From the sequence record NC_042013.1: a DNA stretch of 64,000 bases; one strand, 5' to 3'. The position numbers and the translations under genes were made by a program. The notes under the pieces are model-generated. The model did no database searches. It was not told the DNA's origin and was given only the letters and a program-made list of their open reading frames with translations. Below are positions 6,901 through 63,411 of the stretch, one piece after another; within the stretch, counting starts at the first letter, position 1; each line of letters begins with the position of its first letter.

Positions 6901-9900
6901 ACATTAGTGTTCCATCCAACCAAGCTATCACGCATCTTGTCCCATAGGGTAACGTCAACAACCTTACGGTCGTCTTCGTCACGAACGAGTTGCCATTGCT
7001 TATGGAAAAGTCCATCGTTATCAACGGTTTTCCATTCGAGATGTAATGCGGTGCTTGTATTGTTAACATATACCTTAGAACCACCTACAATAATTTTGTT
7101 TGCAGAAATAACAGCGAACCAAGGAATATCACTTTCAAACGGATTTTGAAGTATTGATGCTACCTGTGTTGCAGTTAGTGTTCTATCAGTTCTTACTGGA
7201 AGTGATGTTGCGTTCTTAACCCAAAAATAATACACGGTTTCCATACGATTATTTTCTTTGTTATATTCTGAACGAACAACATAACTCGGATTTTCGATAT
7301 CTTTCACTTCGCCAGTTGGCTTTTGCTGTGTTCTATCGAAAATAACATTACGATTTAACAATACCGTATCTGCCCAATTATCAGGAGATACCGTACTACG
7401 AGTCCATTCATAGATATCGATAGTGATACCGGGTGCCAAATGGCCCCAATTTCTCCACTTATAATCATCCGAATCAATTTCGTAATCAAGATATCGAGTA
7501 GTACTGATGTCCCACCATAGTGAGCCTTCCTCAATATTGTTCCAAGAATTTTCTTGTGAATTTTCATTAAGAAGAGGACCACGGTTATAAATCGCAGGAT
7601 CATATTCAATAATATATGTCAATTCTTTTTCGACAGAGCCCGGTATAATTCCCTTATAAGGATCAAACAATTGCAATGTTTGAAGAGTTTCTTGTGTATC
7701 AACATCATAAATGTACGCCGATTTAATAAGAGAAGAATCTACCATTGGAGTTTCTTCACGAATAGTATTCCAATCGTCGCCATTGATAACTTTAGTAAAT
7801 TCTTTTACCTTCCACTTAGCTTCAGATTCTGTTGTTGATTCCCAATAACGCTCGTCAAATGTAGACATGCTGTTACGTTCATCCGTGAATGACATAGTCG
7901 CGGTGGTATAATTTTCACCACGATTTTCCATCAAGATATCTTTCACAACCGCAGGGTTAAGAATAACATCAAATTCAACCTTGTTAGTCGATTGATCATT
8001 TTCTATTTCAACTATAGGCGTAGAATCATATCCCCAACCGCTGTTGATAATTGAAACTTCCTTGATAGAACCATCAACAACGCTACTAATAACGGCCTGT
8101 GCATTTCTGCCTGCGCTATGCTTAGGAGTGATGATAATAGTTTCTGTACCAACATATCCACTGTTAGTGTCAGGATTTTTAACGATAATTTTATAAAGAG
8201 ATGTTGGTGCAAGGCGAACAGACGCCTCTGCTCCATTACCGTCACCAGATATCGTAACCTTAGGATCAGCCGTATACTTAGTACCCTTGTTAGTGATGAC
8301 GGGATATGCGAGTGAAGTCTGGCCACTCTTAGGTTCGATTGTCGCCTCGAGACCATAACCGCCTTCAATGCTTCTGTATACGAAACCGTTTACCTTAACC
8401 AAATCGTGGTATGCATAAGGAACGTTAGGCTTCCATTCAACCGCGCTTTCACGTGCGTTGCGGCCATCATCAAGCCATACCTTTGTACCATATGTCCAAC
8501 CGTCAACTGGCAAGTTTCCGATTTCATTCATGACACTCATATCTGCAAAACGAACTGTGTTCCACGCGAATACGTCACCGCCTGTTCCGGTTGAGGCAGA
8601 AATTTGCGGCGTACCATCTTGTTCAAACAATTCGAAACCATTCAAATAATGATAGTCAACAGAAATTGTTAGTAGACCGTTTGTTGCGCCATCGCCGTCA
8701 TAGTAAATGATCATCTTATCATCTTCTAAGATACGATCATTCAAGATAAATGAAGGTAATGTACCTGCAACTTTAAGATCAATATCACGAGAACCAGCAA
8801 CATTATTAACAACGTTAATATAAGCGGTTACTGTGTCACCCATTGTACCATTAGTTACGTTCGGTGTGTCTGTTAATTCAATAACAATACCATCGTCCGT
8901 TTCGGTTACGAGTGAAACAAAATCGGGAATGTTTACTTCATACGTCACGTTCTCTTCTATGTCACCAAGAGGTAACTCGAAGGATTGCAACCAGTATTCA
9001 TTCGTACTTGCATTAGTAGGAGGATTAAATGTTATAGTTTCATCAACATAATCCCAAACACCATAATTTGGATGTGATGGTGGTGAAATTACGCGCTTTC
9101 TCCATTGTGCAATTGTTGTTGGTTCAAGAACTTCAGGAACTGCAATGATTTCAGCAATAGGAGCGCCGCCATTCAATGGAGGTTCGATTAATACTTGACC
9201 GTTTTCGCCAGTCCAAGAACATTTGCCCCAATCATCGATAGTTATTGATGTTACTCTCCACATCATTACAGGCTCGATAATTGCGCCCGCGCCATTACCA
9301 CCACCAACAATGATAGTTGGTTTTGATTTATAACCAATACCAGTCCAAGGATTAATTTTTACGTTTGGTGCGGTCAAATAGCCGCTACCAGCGCCATCAA
9401 TAGTTATGGATGAAATTCCACCATTGGTGTCAAGACTCGCGGTGACAACGCCGTGTGATTGTGGAGCGCCGCCCTCAAACGTAATAATAGGAACCATTTC
9501 CCAACCAGAGCCAGCAACCGCCGTTACTCCTGTTAATGATCCACCTGCAATAGTTGCAGTTGCGGATGATCCAGTTCCTGCACCGGGGATTGTTACGGAT
9601 ACGATTTTACCATTTGAAATATTAGCAACGGCTTTAGCACCCTGACCTTGACCACCAATGACAGATACAGAAGGTGTAGATGTATAGCCATTACCGCCGT
9701 CTACAACGGTATATCCAACAATAGTACCTTCGATATGCGCCGTAGCCTTCACGCCAGTTGGTCCAAGAACGGTTACCTTCGGCATAGAATCGTATGAATA
9801 TCCCCATCCAGAATTTTTAACAACAATAGATGATGGAGTTACAAAGATATTGCCCGTACGAATCAAACGAATAATTGCGTTTTCCTCGCTTTCAAATACG

Positions 9901-58788: not shown

Positions 58789-58837
58789 TATACACTCCTA
58801 AAGTAAAAGGCCACCGTAAACGATGGCCTTGATATTG

Positions 58838-59712: not shown

Positions 59713-60352
59713 TTCTTTTTAATTCCTCTAAATCAATCATAGTCCAATTTATTTTATCTGAATGTGCTAATACAAACGGTAGAATATCCTCTTTATCTTT
59801 GAATGAAAAACAGTGATACTGCTGTTTATAATCAATCTTGTTTTCCTTACAAAAAGCCGTCAAACGATCCTGCGTATTCTGGTTTTGTTTTTGAACAATA
59901 GGAAATGCATTGTAGTGGACGGACGAGGTATCATTAATGATTATTCCAATTTTGAAATTTATGGAATTAGATATTAGAAACCTAACGTCATGTGGATTAA
60001 CCCACACGCTATTTTCTTTTATTTTATTCCAAACAGCATCATAGAGACTAATATCTGGAACGTTGTCCTCTCCACAAATTGATTCGGTAATCTCTAATTT
60101 GTTTTTGATGATTTCCCAATTATTTCTATTTTCCAAAAGATCGAGAAAATCAGGACTGATTTTCACTACGTCACATTCTTCTAGTTGATGGTTCCGCCGC
60201 AACGTTTCTTTGATTTTAAACAAAAAACGTTCTATATTTTTCATGCCTGTAAATTCAGTAATCGACTTAGATGACGATAACGTGACCTTGGACCCACAGA
60301 GAAACTTTTTTGTTTCTTTATGGCGAATAGTATAGAACGTTTTAACTGGCAT
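59705..60352 (-). CDS. Hypothetical protein
   Basis: 215 aa, coupled in the operon. Confidence 0.6.
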   Translation of the reverse strand: MPVKTFYTIRHKETKKFLCGSKVTLSSSKSITEFTGMKNIERFLFKIKETLRRNHQLEECDVVKISPDFLDLLENRNNWEIIKNKLEITESICGEDNVPDISLYDAVWNKIKENSVWVNPHDVRFLISNSINFKIGIIINDTSSVHYNAFPIVQKQNQNTQDRLTAFCKENKIDYKQQYHCFSFKDKEDILPFVLAHSDKINWTMIDLEELKRNG

Positions 60353-61161
60353 TAGTCATCCCCGAAATCAAATAAACCATTATTATGAATGGTAATTTTG
60401 TTTTGGTCAATAGTCTTTTGTATGCGTTGGACACTTGGCGTGTAATATTTTTCATCCATTTCCATACAAATCCATTTACGACCAGTGTTCTCGGATGCAA
60501 CAGCAGTTGTACCGGAACCTGACGTATTATCCAAAACAGTGTCGCCTTTATTGGTATATGTTTTGATCAAATATTCAAAAAGTTCAACAGGCTTTTGTGT
60601 TGGATGAACCGCTGATGTTTCTGAACCAATGTCAATAACTGACGTTGGATAACCGGTTTGGGTTTGAATGTAAGTATCCCCCGGTTGACCAGACAACTGA
60701 CCATAGTTCGATGTGGACTTGCCGGTCGCCTTTGATTTCTGTACGCCACAAACTTTTTGAATGTGACGAACACCTTGCGGATTATATGTTGGCTGACTTT
60801 TATAAAACACCAAAACACTCTCATGTGAACGGAGAGGTTGTTTCTTAGCATTTAGAAATCCAGTTACTTTCGACTTGTGCCAAATCCATTCGTACTTAAA
60901 ATACTTAAGCTGTGATTGCACAAGGGCGCTTGTAAACGGTTGTGCAGACGTTAATACGATTGCAGCATTTGGTTTAGTGATACGCCAGTACTGTTCCCAT
61001 AAAGGTTCAAATGGGATGATTTCTTTATCAAATTCATTTTGCGTTGTTCCATACGGAAGATCACAAAGAATCATATCCACGGAACCATCCGGTAATGTAG
61101 CCATAAGGTCAAGACAATTCCCGTTATAGATGGTTCCGTTATCAAAATCGTGTTTAATCAT
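60352..61161 (-). CDS. N4-cytosine/N6-adenine DNA methyltransferase (beta class), orphan
   Basis: GNCLDLM, CDLPYGTT, HPTQKPV, LDNTSGSGTT. Confidence 0.9.
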   Translation of the reverse strand: MIKHDFDNGTIYNGNCLDLMATLPDGSVDMILCDLPYGTTQNEFDKEIIPFEPLWEQYWRITKPNAAIVLTSAQPFTSALVQSQLKYFKYEWIWHKSKVTGFLNAKKQPLRSHESVLVFYKSQPTYNPQGVRHIQKVCGVQKSKATGKSTSNYGQLSGQPGDTYIQTQTGYPTSVIDIGSETSAVHPTQKPVELFEYLIKTYTNKGDTVLDNTSGSGTTAVASENTGRKWICMEMDEKYYTPSVQRIQKTIDQNKITIHNNGLFDFGDD

Positions 61162-61172
61162 GTTTGCAATCC

Positions 61173-61781
61173 TTATGCGATAGTTAGCATACCAGATGCA
61201 ATATGATCCTTAAAGAAAATTCTTGGATTGGTATCGGCCTCGCCATTACCCGTATCAATTGCCGCAGTTAGGCTTTCAATAAGAGTAACTTTTACGCCAT
61301 TCTTAATGAAACCATTAATTGCTGTTGCTACGCAAAAATTCATTGCTACACCGACAACAACCACCTCATCACCAGCGTGCTTGATAGATTCAAGAATTTC
61401 GTCTCTATCAAAGAAAACAGCGCGAGTTCCATCTCTGAAACGTACGTCTACGTCATTCTCCCACATATCAAACACGTCTTTTCTCAAGGTGAGAACGTCA
61501 ATACCGCCATTAACAATGTGTGGATTAATCACGTTTTCCCAACCGCGTGTACCATATTCACAATGCAGAGGAAACATCTTACTTTCCTCATAATCTGAAT
61601 ATGTATCCGCATGGTGGGTATCAAACGTGAATAGAACACCGCTGGTTTCTGTTGGACTTAGATTTGAAAGGTACTTGTTGAGCGGTACGATCAAATCCTC
61701 CGATCCGTTAACGTAAAGAATGCCATCGGACATCATAAAATCATACTGCGTATCAACAACTACAACATATTTTTTTGCCAT
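61173..61781 (-). CDS. pncA: Nicotinamidase (isochorismatase family)
   Basis: VVVDTQYDF, TFDTH, PLHCEYGTRGW, RKDVF, VGVAMNFCV catalytic motifs. Confidence 0.88.
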   Translation of the reverse strand: MAKKYVVVVDTQYDFMMSDGILYVNGSEDLIVPLNKYLSNLSPTETSGVLFTFDTHHADTYSDYEESKMFPLHCEYGTRGWENVINPHIVNGGIDVLTLRKDVFDMWENDVDVRFRDGTRAVFFDRDEILESIKHAGDEVVVVGVAMNFCVATAINGFIKNGVKVTLIESLTAAIDTGNGEADTNPRIFFKDHIASGMLTIA

Positions 61782-61785
61782 TTCA

Positions 61786-62412
61786 TTACCTCATTATAAA
61801 TTTCTTTGGGTATGTATTAAGGATAATATCATGGTTTACGCGGGGAATCCATTTTTTCCATTCTTTTACTTCACCCAAACTGATTAAAGTTCGAATTTCA
61901 GTTGCAGATGGGCAATCGTTTTTCTCGCGGTCGATGATATGAAGAAGGCGTTCCTCCCCGTTAGGAGCGATAAAACCATCCTCATCATCAAACGGTGGAA
62001 GGTCTGAGTAACTTTCAACCATAGGATCAACCATCATTTCGTTATAAAAACGTTCGGCGTACCATACAGCGTCTGCTTTGCTTCCAGAATAATAATCGGT
62101 TACATTTTCGTAACCGTACTTTTTACACATATCGAGTACGTAATCAACCCAATCATTTTTGGAACGATTTTTATCTTTTTTCGGTAAATCTTCCAATGGA
62201 ATAATTACCAGACGATCACCAAAAACATTTCTAAACATTTCGGTTCTAATGACCTGTGTCCAAGGATTTGATTCGTCAATATCATTGCCAGTAGAACCAA
62301 GTCCAAGAATAGCGGTATCACATTCGCGTGTAATACGTGTTAAGATATCAAGGTGGCCGATATGCGGGGGTTGACCTCGCATTACGGCAAAACCAATTCT
62401 TTTACTTGCCAT
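61786..62412 (-). CDS. NMN/NaMN adenylyltransferase (NadM/NadR-like cytidylyltransferase fold)
   Basis: RGQPPHIGH (HxGH), ILGLGS, NPWT..IR.EM, SATEIR; likely start MASKRIG at 62412. Confidence 0.82.
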   Translation of the reverse strand: MASKRIGFAVMRGQPPHIGHLDILTRITRECDTAILGLGSTGNDIDESNPWTQVIRTEMFRNVFGDRLVIIPLEDLPKKDKNRSKNDWVDYVLDMCKKYGYENVTDYYSGSKADAVWYAERFYNEMMVDPMVESYSDLPPFDDEDGFIAPNGEERLLHIIDREKNDCPSATEIRTLISLGEVKEWKKWIPRVNHDIILNTYPKKFIMR

Positions 62413-62899
62413 TAATAATCTCCCATACATCATCAACGATTTCATTGTGATTAAATGCGAGGGTCATATTGGAAATTTCGTGATGAGTAAAAGTTGACAA
62501 CTCAGCAAGATCGTCACCGGCACGAGAATCGTCTTCCTCTTGTGCGGTAAGGCGAACATAATAACAAATATTAACCACGTGGCAGCGTGGGTCCGTTTTT
62601 GGCTTGGATTTTACTTTTGCAAGCTGGAGGCGATCTTCGGTAATAACAATTCCGGTTTCTTCAAAAATCTCGCGGATTGCAGTTTCTTCGATGGTTTCGC
62701 CTTCAGACAATAGGCTTTCATCAAATTCCACCATATCACCTTCTTCGACCAATGGGTCCATAAAACCACCCGGTATACAATAATAGCCGGAAAATGCACT
62801 GTCCTTACGACCACGAAGCCCACATAGAAAATGATTGTCGTGGGTAACAAGTACAATCGTTGCCGTAACAGCCGGTCGTGGATGAGCATATTTGAACAT
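62402..62899 (-). CDS. Nudix hydrolase (ADP-ribose pyrophosphatase-like)
   Basis: HPRPAVTATIV, YCIPGGF, Nudix box GETIEETAIREIFEETG, R.DPR, LAFNH; TTTACA-N17-TATATT promoter upstream. Confidence 0.88.
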   Translation of the reverse strand: MFKYAHPRPAVTATIVLVTHDNHFLCGLRGRKDSAFSGYYCIPGGFMDPLVEEGDMVEFDESLLSEGETIEETAIREIFEETGIVITEDRLQLAKVKSKPKTDPRCHVVNICYYVRLTAQEEDDSRAGDDLAELSTFTHHEISNMTLAFNHNEIVDDVWEIINGK

Positions 62900-62979
62900 A
62901 GTATCTCCTTTTAATTTGATTTGTAAAAAATATACCAGAAAAAGGCAAACGTGTAAATACATAAAAAGGAGTGTTTTTC

Positions 62980-63411
62980 ATGTTAAAACTTAAAGGGTTG
63001 GTAGGGAAAAGTTTTAAAATTTTTGGATTATTACCCCAAATAAGATGGGATACCCCATCAACATTACCACCACATTATTATAATTATAATTTCACACAAA
63101 ACATTTCTATTTCAAGTAAATATCCAATAACTAAGGTAGTTGTTACCAATGGTTCATTGCCAACTGGAGTATTTGTAACTCAAAGCGGTATGATATTTGG
63201 TAGATTAAATGGATCAGGCTCGCCAACTACGAGCACCTTTACTTTAACTGCAACAGATTCAACTGGTTTTAGTGATAGTAAAGAATATATACTTACTATA
63301 GAGGAATATATAACTGAAGTTGTATGGATAACCGATCCAATTATTACTGAAGAATATGGTATTGGTCAAGGTGTTTATAATAAAGTTATTGCGGAAAGTG
63401 AAATAAAATGA
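62980..63411 (+). CDS. Ig-like (He_PIG-type) repeat virion protein
   Basis: W.T...GSLPTG...G.I.G...TFTLTATDS motif; TAAATA and AAGGAG upstream. Confidence 0.7.
   Translation: MLKLKGLVGKSFKIFGLLPQIRWDTPSTLPPHYYNYNFTQNISISSKYPITKVVVTNGSLPTGVFVTQSGMIFGRLNGSGSPTTSTFTLTATDSTGFSDSKEYILTIEEYITEVVWITDPIITEEYGIGQGVYNKVIAESEIK

Follow-up and report, generated by a model that had tools for sequence, protein, structure and literature searches.

The genes gp238, gp237 and gp236, which lie next to each other on the minus strand of the Agrobacterium jumbo phage Atu_ph07 (MF403008 / NC_042013, 490,380 bp), probably encode three of the five enzymes of a phage-borne deamidating salvage pathway for nicotinamide adenine dinucleotide (NAD+), that is, a Preiss-Handler route in the Acinetobacter/archaeal form with NadM in the place of NadD. 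The window analysed is a stretch of 64,000 nucleotides corresponding to positions 124001-188000 of the record, and positions given below are those of the window unless the record is named. A first reading of the letters of this DNA (the original prediction) had placed three coupled genes at 61173-62899, and open reading frames (ORFs) were found exactly there, all three in agreement with the GenBank/RefSeq gene models; the 3.2-kb stretch around gp236-gp238 is 100% identical to the Atu_ph07 record. Observed directly are the genes themselves, their family membership, their intact catalytic residues, their conserved clustering in related phages and the purifying selection acting on them. The three genes are:

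62402-62899, minus strand: gp238, 165 aa, predicted Nudix hydrolase of the NrtR / NadM-Nudix ADP-ribose clade
61786-62412, minus strand: gp237, 208 aa, predicted archaeal/NadM-type adenylyltransferase for nicotinamide mononucleotide (NMN) or nicotinate mononucleotide (NaMN)
61173-61781, minus strand: gp236, 202 aa, predicted PncA-like nicotinamidase, annotated as 'hypothetical protein'

The end of gp238 and the start of gp237 share 11 nt, GGGAG being the Shine-Dalgarno sequence ahead of gp237, and a 4-nt spacer with GAGG upstream separates the end of gp237 from the ATG of gp236, which confirms that the three genes are translationally coupled. The ATG of gp238 is itself preceded by AAAGGAG as Shine-Dalgarno sequence.

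In the proposed pathway, nicotinamide from NAD+ cleavage would be deamidated to nicotinate by gp236 and nicotinate would react with phosphoribosyl pyrophosphate (PRPP) to NaMN by means of the phage PncB gp242. Adenylation by gp237 would then lead to nicotinate adenine dinucleotide (NaAD), and its amidation by the glutamine-dependent NadE of the phage to NAD+. ADP-ribose would be hydrolysed by gp238 to AMP and ribose-5-phosphate, which the host Prs could turn into PRPP.

Identification of the three gene products

A match of 34.2 bits to the Pfam family Isochorismatase (PF00857) was obtained for gp236, which belongs to PHROG 19305, labelled 'unknown function'; a search of 5.8 billion proteins led to a family of 45 clusters, nearly all of them metagenomic. 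Alignment of 44 homologues revealed an invariant catalytic triad D10/K101/C150 as well as invariant metal ligands D54/H56/H73 and C74 with its PxHC motif. Triad and metal residues align with the PncA residues of 3r2j (Leishmania) and 3pl1 (M. tuberculosis), with 'FDTHH' and 'FPLHC' of gp236 corresponding to 'QDWHP' and 'WPPHC' of Leishmania PnC1. The combination of an Asp-x-His...His metal site with PxHC is what we take to set nicotinamidases apart within the isochorismatase superfamily. When the AlphaFold2 (AF2) model of gp236 (pLDDT 93.9, pTM 0.91) was compared with the PDB by Foldseek, the best seven matches were nicotinamidases/pyrazinamidases, 1ilw, 3r2j, 2wta and 3pl1 being among the top ones. 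Active site and modelled fold identify gp236 as a predicted nicotinamidase of a very divergent phage clade.

For gp237 the match to Pfam CTP_transf_like was marginal (21.3 bits; cut-off 21). A family profile built from 15 homologues detected the NMNAT of M. jannaschii (1f9a, E 3.8e-19), that of M. thermoautotrophicum (~1e-18) and the NadM-Nudix proteins of Francisella and Synechocystis (2qjt/2qjo, ~1e-13; 2qjt 9e-14), and gave no NadD match at E<0.01. The fold ranking of the AF2 model (pLDDT 84.9) was headed by archaeal NMNAT, NadM and NadR, with NadD far lower and behind several PPAT matches. As profile and fold ranking both favour the NadM type, an assignment of gp237 as NadD was ruled out. 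R12, P15, H17, G19 and H20 (the HxGH motif) are invariant among the 15 homologues, and in the C-terminal SATEIR, which aligns with 'SGTEIR' of 1f9a (SxTxxR motif), S169, A170 and T171 hardly vary and R174 does not vary at all. Invariant residues of gp237 match positions mutated in archaeal crystals according to PDB titles (R11, H19, R136). From profile and model, gp237 is assigned as a predicted, very divergent archaeal/NadM-type NMN/NaMN adenylyltransferase, which probably re-adenylates NMN besides NaMN. In archaea NadM acts on both NMN and NaMN, and in Acinetobacter a bifunctional enzyme of this type works together with a conventional NAD synthetase, so there is a cellular precedent for the combination proposed here (PMC3376133).

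Scores of 53.8 bits (Pfam NUDIX) and 118 bits (phrog_1198) were obtained for gp238. Best matches of its family profile were 2fml, 3i9x, 2yyh, NrtR (3gz5/3gz8) and NadM-Nudix (2qjt/2qjo), several of which are uncharacterised structural-genomics entries. Among 13 homologues the REx2EE helix is intact (E68, R76, E77, E80 and E81 invariant), and the motifs TD(P/T)R (T102, D103, R105) and (A)FNH (F149, N150, H151) are invariant in the residues given. The Nudix box departs from the canonical Gx5Ex7 spacing and carries a variable insertion between PGGF and GE, which comprises ~16 aa in gp238 (residues ~48-64, window 62700-62770) and 0 to ~35 aa in the family, two relatives having no insertion. An ADP-ribose pyrophosphatase is predicted, and gp238 and gp237 together resemble, in their predicted domains, a split and order-reversed version of the bifunctional NadM-Nudix protein (NatV) of the phage pathway NARP2. 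The identities predicted here for the three gene products agree with the original prediction.

Remaining enzymes of the pathway

That no phosphoribosyltransferase is present in the window had been noted before and is correct; PncB starts 1,773 nt past its end. It had been left open whether PncB and NadE come from the host or from elsewhere in the genome, and both turned out to be phage-encoded:

record 189773-191071, divergent from gp238-gp236: gp242, PncB, 1.8 kb past the window end
record ~100.8-102.4 kb: NadE, 557 aa, two-domain, glutamine-dependent NAD+ synthetase, 84 kb away

One intergenic region separates gp238 from the unit containing gp242, which runs in the opposite direction, and gp242 lies 2.9 kb from the gp238-gp236 genes. 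It scores above both curated cut-offs for nicotinate phosphoribosyltransferase (NaPRT) (NF003704, 464.6 vs 379 bits; TIGR01514, 292.7 vs 269.55 bits) and aligns over its full length to PncB of Hyphomicrobiales and other Alphaproteobacteria with 51-58% identity. NadE reached 557.2 bits against NF010588 (cut-off 479) and resembles solved glutamine-dependent NAD synthetases.

A NadV elsewhere in the genome would, according to the original prediction, have made this a standard NARP2/KVP40-type pathway. However, gp242, which passes the NaPRT cut-offs, is the sole NAPRTase-family (PF04095) gene in the whole Atu_ph07 genome, and phmmer with a phage Nampt-like query gave no match, so that NARP2 was ruled out. 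NARP1 was ruled out as well, since searches with PF13793 and with Prs-like and Nampt-like phage queries gave no Prs/Adps-like or Namat-like gene in Atu_ph07. The Preiss-Handler route originally suggested agrees with this gene content and with the clustering of five genes in relatives described below.

Conservation in related phages and selection

The only close cultured relative is Sinorhizobium phage Phosso. Its genes are ordered NadE - x - PncB - four small genes - Nudix - NMNAT - PncA homologue - x - NDT-fold gene, all co-directional within ~6.5 kb, and a 55-kb JGI contig (L013) has the same co-directional arrangement, again of ~6.5 kb. A pattern scan of IMG/VR led to 43 loci, many on contigs of 360-517 kb. 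phmmer searches of the ORFs of these loci and dereplication reduced the set to 16 distinct close homologues, each with 6 kb or more of sequence upstream and all from uncultured phages. In 15 of these 16 loci PncB was detected no more than 10 kb from the PncA homologue; at the same distance NMNAT and NadE were each seen in 14 loci, Nudix in 13 loci and a PF15891 NDT-fold gene in 10 loci. Most loci have the order NadE-PncB-Nudix-NMNAT-PncA. Such recurrent clustering of all five genes supports a functional link. Atu_ph07 would, judging from gene order, represent a rearranged version of the cluster that retains Nudix, NMNAT and PncA together.

At the same cluster position NadE is either of the two-domain glutamine-dependent type (L018, L020, L027) or of the short ammonia-dependent type (L011, L013, L016 and others), which implies that the gene of the final step has apparently been swapped repeatedly among related phages. 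Since the type of enzyme varies and the step is kept, selection would act on the pathway and hitch-hiking would not explain the pattern. Some relatives (L022 group) have PncB-NadE-NMNAT-PncA without Nudix.

In a metagenome run an Atu_ph07 variant was detected that is ~98.7% identical across window positions 60300-63100 and has no indels. The differences listed for gp236-gp238 number 18, with 17 at third codon positions and 16 synonymous, the pattern of purifying selection on the three genes. Parts of the same region (60300-63100) were also found in biofilm, tobacco, sediment and other metagenomes; close relatives of Atu_ph07 are environmentally widespread.

Several further genes accompany the cluster in relatives. 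The PF15891 gene, nucleoside-deoxyribosyltransferase-like (L011:10040-10492; L013:10726-11202), is found in most relatives 3' of the PncA homologue and is absent from Atu_ph07. One subclade has two small conserved genes (~87-113 aa and ~147 aa) without Pfam match between NMNAT and PncA (L016:8744-9007 and L016:9176-9622; homologues in L017, L019, L020, L027, L029 and L033), a pair that does not occur at the NMNAT/PncA position in Atu_ph07. On contig IMGVR_UViG_3300008255_004210 (L034:8962-9963, 7517-8452) a gene for a NadA quinolinate synthase (363 bits) immediately precedes the PncA homologue, and close by lies a radical-SAM gene, which was found in L036 as well; some phages may, from these matches, carry de novo NAD genes next to the salvage cluster. 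A different recurrent cluster in gut and other phages consists, in this order, of a nicotinamidase, a Prs/Adps-like protein, an NAPRTase-family protein (Nampt/Namat-like, 500-600 aa) and an NAD synthase (L012:4998-9436 in Phage Phass-1, OQ749652; also L049, L054 and L055). As a deamidase and an amidating enzyme here enclose a pair resembling NARP1, one possible idea for this Phass-1-type cluster is a 'deamidated NARP1', in which nicotinate and ADPR-PP would be converted via NaAD to NAD+.

Neighbouring gene and transcription signals

Two features flank the three genes, and a third lies further downstream:

60352-61161, minus strand: gp235, DNA N6/N4 (adenine-type) methyltransferase
62929-62957, minus strand: sigma70-like promoter match, TTTACA-17 nt-TATATT, TG-extended
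58807-58830, minus strand: terminator-like hairpin between gp232 and gp231

Only 11 nt separate the gp236 stop from the start of gp235, which has its own Shine-Dalgarno sequence (AAGGA) and scores 101.9 bits with PF01555 and 269 bits with PADLOC MTase_II. It is a tightly coupled downstream neighbour outside the NAD pathway, and the boundary of a three-gene operon as originally drawn is not supported. On this strand a strong terminator-like hairpin first occurs at 58830-58807 (10-bp stem with 6 GC pairs and a T-rich tail), which is likely the end of the transcription unit beginning at gp238.

The sigma70-type promoter of the original prediction is present as a site and is sensibly placed: a divergent intergenic region of 80 bp separates gp238 from gp239, and the site lies within it, ~30 nt ahead of the gp238 ATG. 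Because promoter matches of such quality occur at chance frequency in the region (22 observed vs 24.0 +/- 5.9 in shuffles), the site is plausible by its position only and is no evidence of function. One RNA-library run contains a contig of 244 nt that agrees completely with part of gp236; such contigs cannot prove transcription.

Further NAD-related genes of Atu_ph07

Other genes of the phage that concern NAD+ or ADP-ribose are, in record positions:

420809-422761: PnuC gp586 and HTH-less (helix-turn-helix-less) NadR-like NMNAT/RNK gp587, homologous to the published NARP3 pair
475382-475966: second HIGH-nucleotidyltransferase, 194 aa, of the same PHROG (3041) as gp237
217410-217973 and 459410-459724: NAD+-dependent LigA-type DNA ligase (682-aa ORF) and Macro-domain protein (155 aa)

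With gp586 and gp587, Atu_ph07 appears to have two independent NAD+ routes. No PDB sequence matched the second HIGH-nucleotidyltransferase, which could act as an alternative adenylyltransferase for NaMN or NMN. The LigA-type ligase uses NAD+ and the Macro-domain protein processes ADP-ribose. Neither a SIR2 nor an ADPrib_exo_Tox enzyme was found in Atu_ph07, these being the two families searched.

Weighing of the proposed pathway and its purpose

Several points weigh against the proposed pathway. Two of its proteins score far below curated models, namely gp236 with 21.7 bits against the PncA equivalog NF008623 (cut-off 174) and gp237 with 46.1 and 47.1 bits against the archaeal NMNAT models TIGR01527 and NF002243 of NCBIfam (cut-offs 181.2 and 127). 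NadM-type enzymes often favour NMN, which makes the NaMN step an assumption, and with its unusual Nudix-box insertion gp238 could have a substrate other than ADP-ribose. In Atu_ph07 the cluster is split up, NadE being 84 kb off and PncB on the opposite strand. Moreover, a genome search with PF13793 and a phage Prs-like query gave no Prs-like gene, and therefore PRPP has to be supplied by the host. Every enzymatic activity, the specificity of gp237 for NaMN and the purpose of the module are what we infer from sequence, and given PnuC with NadR, the second HIGH-nucleotidyltransferase and the NAD-dependent ligase, the module may serve general NAD housekeeping and not counter-defence.

The poor PncA score, the 'unknown function' of PHROG 19305 and fold matches that also include N-carbamoylsarcosine amidase and other cysteine hydrolases would fit an isochorismatase-family amidohydrolase with another substrate, in which case the pathway would begin from imported nicotinate only. 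With the Asp-x-His...His site and PxHC invariant in the family, nicotinamidases as the best seven fold matches and PncB recurrently adjoining the homologues, this appears very improbable. The NadM character of gp237 also raises the question of the order of steps. NadM enzymes use NMN efficiently, and in Francisella the replacement of NadD by NadM goes along with an NMN-synthetase NadE (PMC3376133); by analogy, the NadE homologue would amidate NaMN to NMN and gp237 would be a true NMN adenylyltransferase. We regard this order as unlikely, because NadE of Atu_ph07 is two-domain and glutamine-dependent and lies above the cut-off of an NAD+ synthase equivalog, and because the short NadE of Phosso scores far higher with 3dpi (303 bits) and 1ee1 (278 bits) than with the Francisella enzyme 3fiu (120 bits). 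Alternatively, the enzymes might remove compounds and not synthesize any: gp238 would break down toxic ADP-ribose or immune signals derived from ADP-ribose, and gp236 would clear nicotinamide and so relieve product inhibition of, or base-exchange on, NAD-consuming enzymes. In favour of removal, gp238 falls into a putatively ADP-ribose-binding clade, and a PADLOC scan of the gp236-gp238 proteins gave as its single match a weak one of gp238 to the defence-associated Nudix candidate PDC-S07 (25 bits); phage enzymes degrading signals of the cyclic ADP-ribose (cADPR) type are on record (10.64898/2026.05.28.727677). However, recurrent tight linkage to PncB and NadE makes sense for synthesis only, and the L022-group relatives retain the other four genes without Nudix. 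Clearance of inhibitory nicotinamide by PncA had been offered as an alternative in the original prediction and found little footing, as neither of the two enzyme families searched (SIR2, ADPrib_exo_Tox), which would benefit, was detected in the phage. Removal is accordingly improbable.

For the deamidating salvage pathway itself the purpose could be NAD+ upkeep for the phage's own needs, the defeat of NAD+-depleting defences, or both. The same chemistry may provide an auxiliary NAD+ supply for the large replication programme of the phage and not a dedicated counter-defence, which we hold as a serious though somewhat doubtful possibility. It would agree with the NAD+-dependent ligase and Macro-domain protein of Atu_ph07, with the redundancy of its NAD routes and with the NadA beside the PncA homologue of one related viral contig, and in published surveys jumbo-phage NAD genes are mostly treated as biosynthetic capacity (PMC11662467). 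On the other hand, the product of LigA is NMN and not nicotinamide, so that ligase turnover needs no nicotinamidase, whereas SIR2/TIR NADases release exactly nicotinamide and ADP-ribose. The presence of one enzyme per NADase product favours a link to NAD+ cleavage, and the experimentally tested phage NAD pathways, NARP1-3, are all counter-defences. A role against NAD+-destroying bacterial defences is plausible on these grounds, and the two purposes are compatible and not exclusive. We tentatively propose, as a reading that could still prove wrong, that PncA-PncB-NadM-NadE with an ADP-ribose Nudix constitutes a fourth, mechanistically distinct phage NAD+ reconstitution pathway, which would be conserved in a clade of soil/freshwater jumbo phages and would overcome depletion of the SIR2/TIR/Thoeris type via deamidated intermediates.

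NAD+ depletion is among the commonest bacterial anti-phage strategies, and the three phage NAD+-restoring pathways demonstrated so far contain no nicotinamidase, PncB or NadE. If the deamidating route does restore NAD+, it would widen the counter-defence repertoire, account for a gene cluster that recurs in giant soil phages and give a function to the 'hypothetical' phage protein family PHROG 19305; it could also escape host measures against NMN or Nampt-type salvage. If the module merely boosts NAD+ for replication, it would be a tidy and unsurprising auxiliary metabolic pathway. As Atu_ph07 is cultivable and holds both the deamidating route and a NARP3-like pair, the contributions of the two could be genetically separable.

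Comparison with known systems

The original prediction had called this pathway a third route, a label that has to be given up: NARP3, consisting of PnuC and NadR, is already published (Sci Adv 2026, PMC13464706), and a survey of gut jumbo phages had earlier predicted complete 'Preiss-Handler' pncB-nadD-nadE clusters by annotation only, with a brief mention of phage pncA (Microbiome 2024, PMC11662467). What is new here is a predicted variant that starts with a nicotinamidase, uses NadM and is linked to a Nudix; it belongs to a class of phage NAD+ pathways that had been predicted before and occurs in a phage and host that can be cultivated. In the literature searched, no 'NARP4' and no phage nicotinamidase with counter-defence function was described. 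In the paper that first described Atu_ph07, NadR, PnuC and three further Nudix genes are listed, PncB is mentioned as a PCR marker only, and gp236-238 and NadE are not discussed.

Among the demonstrated systems, NARP1 (Adps + Namat) and NARP2 (Nampt + Nmnat-Nudix) lack PncA, PncB and NadE, and the original preprint is silent on all three. The recycling of both NADase products would be shared with NARP1; Atu_ph07, however, has neither Prs/Adps-like nor Namat/Nampt-like genes, and ADP-ribose is predicted to be hydrolysed and not pyrophosphorylated. With NARP2, represented by NadV-NatV of Vibrio phage KVP40, the predicted route has in common that it is phage-encoded, starts from nicotinamide and combines a NadM-type adenylyltransferase with an ADP-ribose-type Nudix. 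In contrast, Nampt is missing in Atu_ph07, where PncA, PncB and NadE with deamidated intermediates would replace a single amidated step, and Nudix and NMNAT are separate proteins and not a bifunctional one. NARP3 likewise restores NAD+ in phage infection and has homologues in gp586 and gp587, but gp236-gp238 lie at a different locus, and NARP3 uses imported nicotinamide riboside as precursor and other enzymes.

The closest cellular counterpart is the Preiss-Handler pathway PncA-PncB-NadM-NadE of Acinetobacter (PMC3376133), whose four enzyme families and logical sequence of steps are the same. Unlike this bacterial variant, the route of Atu_ph07 is viral, its PncA, NMNAT and Nudix belong to divergent phage-specific clades, and the set comes together with an ADP-ribose-type Nudix and, among relatives, with the PF15891 NDT-fold gene. 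The 'NAD-jumbo phages' (PMC11662467) also have PncB and NadE in a biosynthetic cluster. Compared with their pncB-nadD-nadE clusters, Atu_ph07 has an adenylyltransferase predicted to be of the NadM and not the NadD type, a Nudix and a nicotinamidase that would allow entry from the NADase product, and its host, A. tumefaciens C58, can be cultivated.

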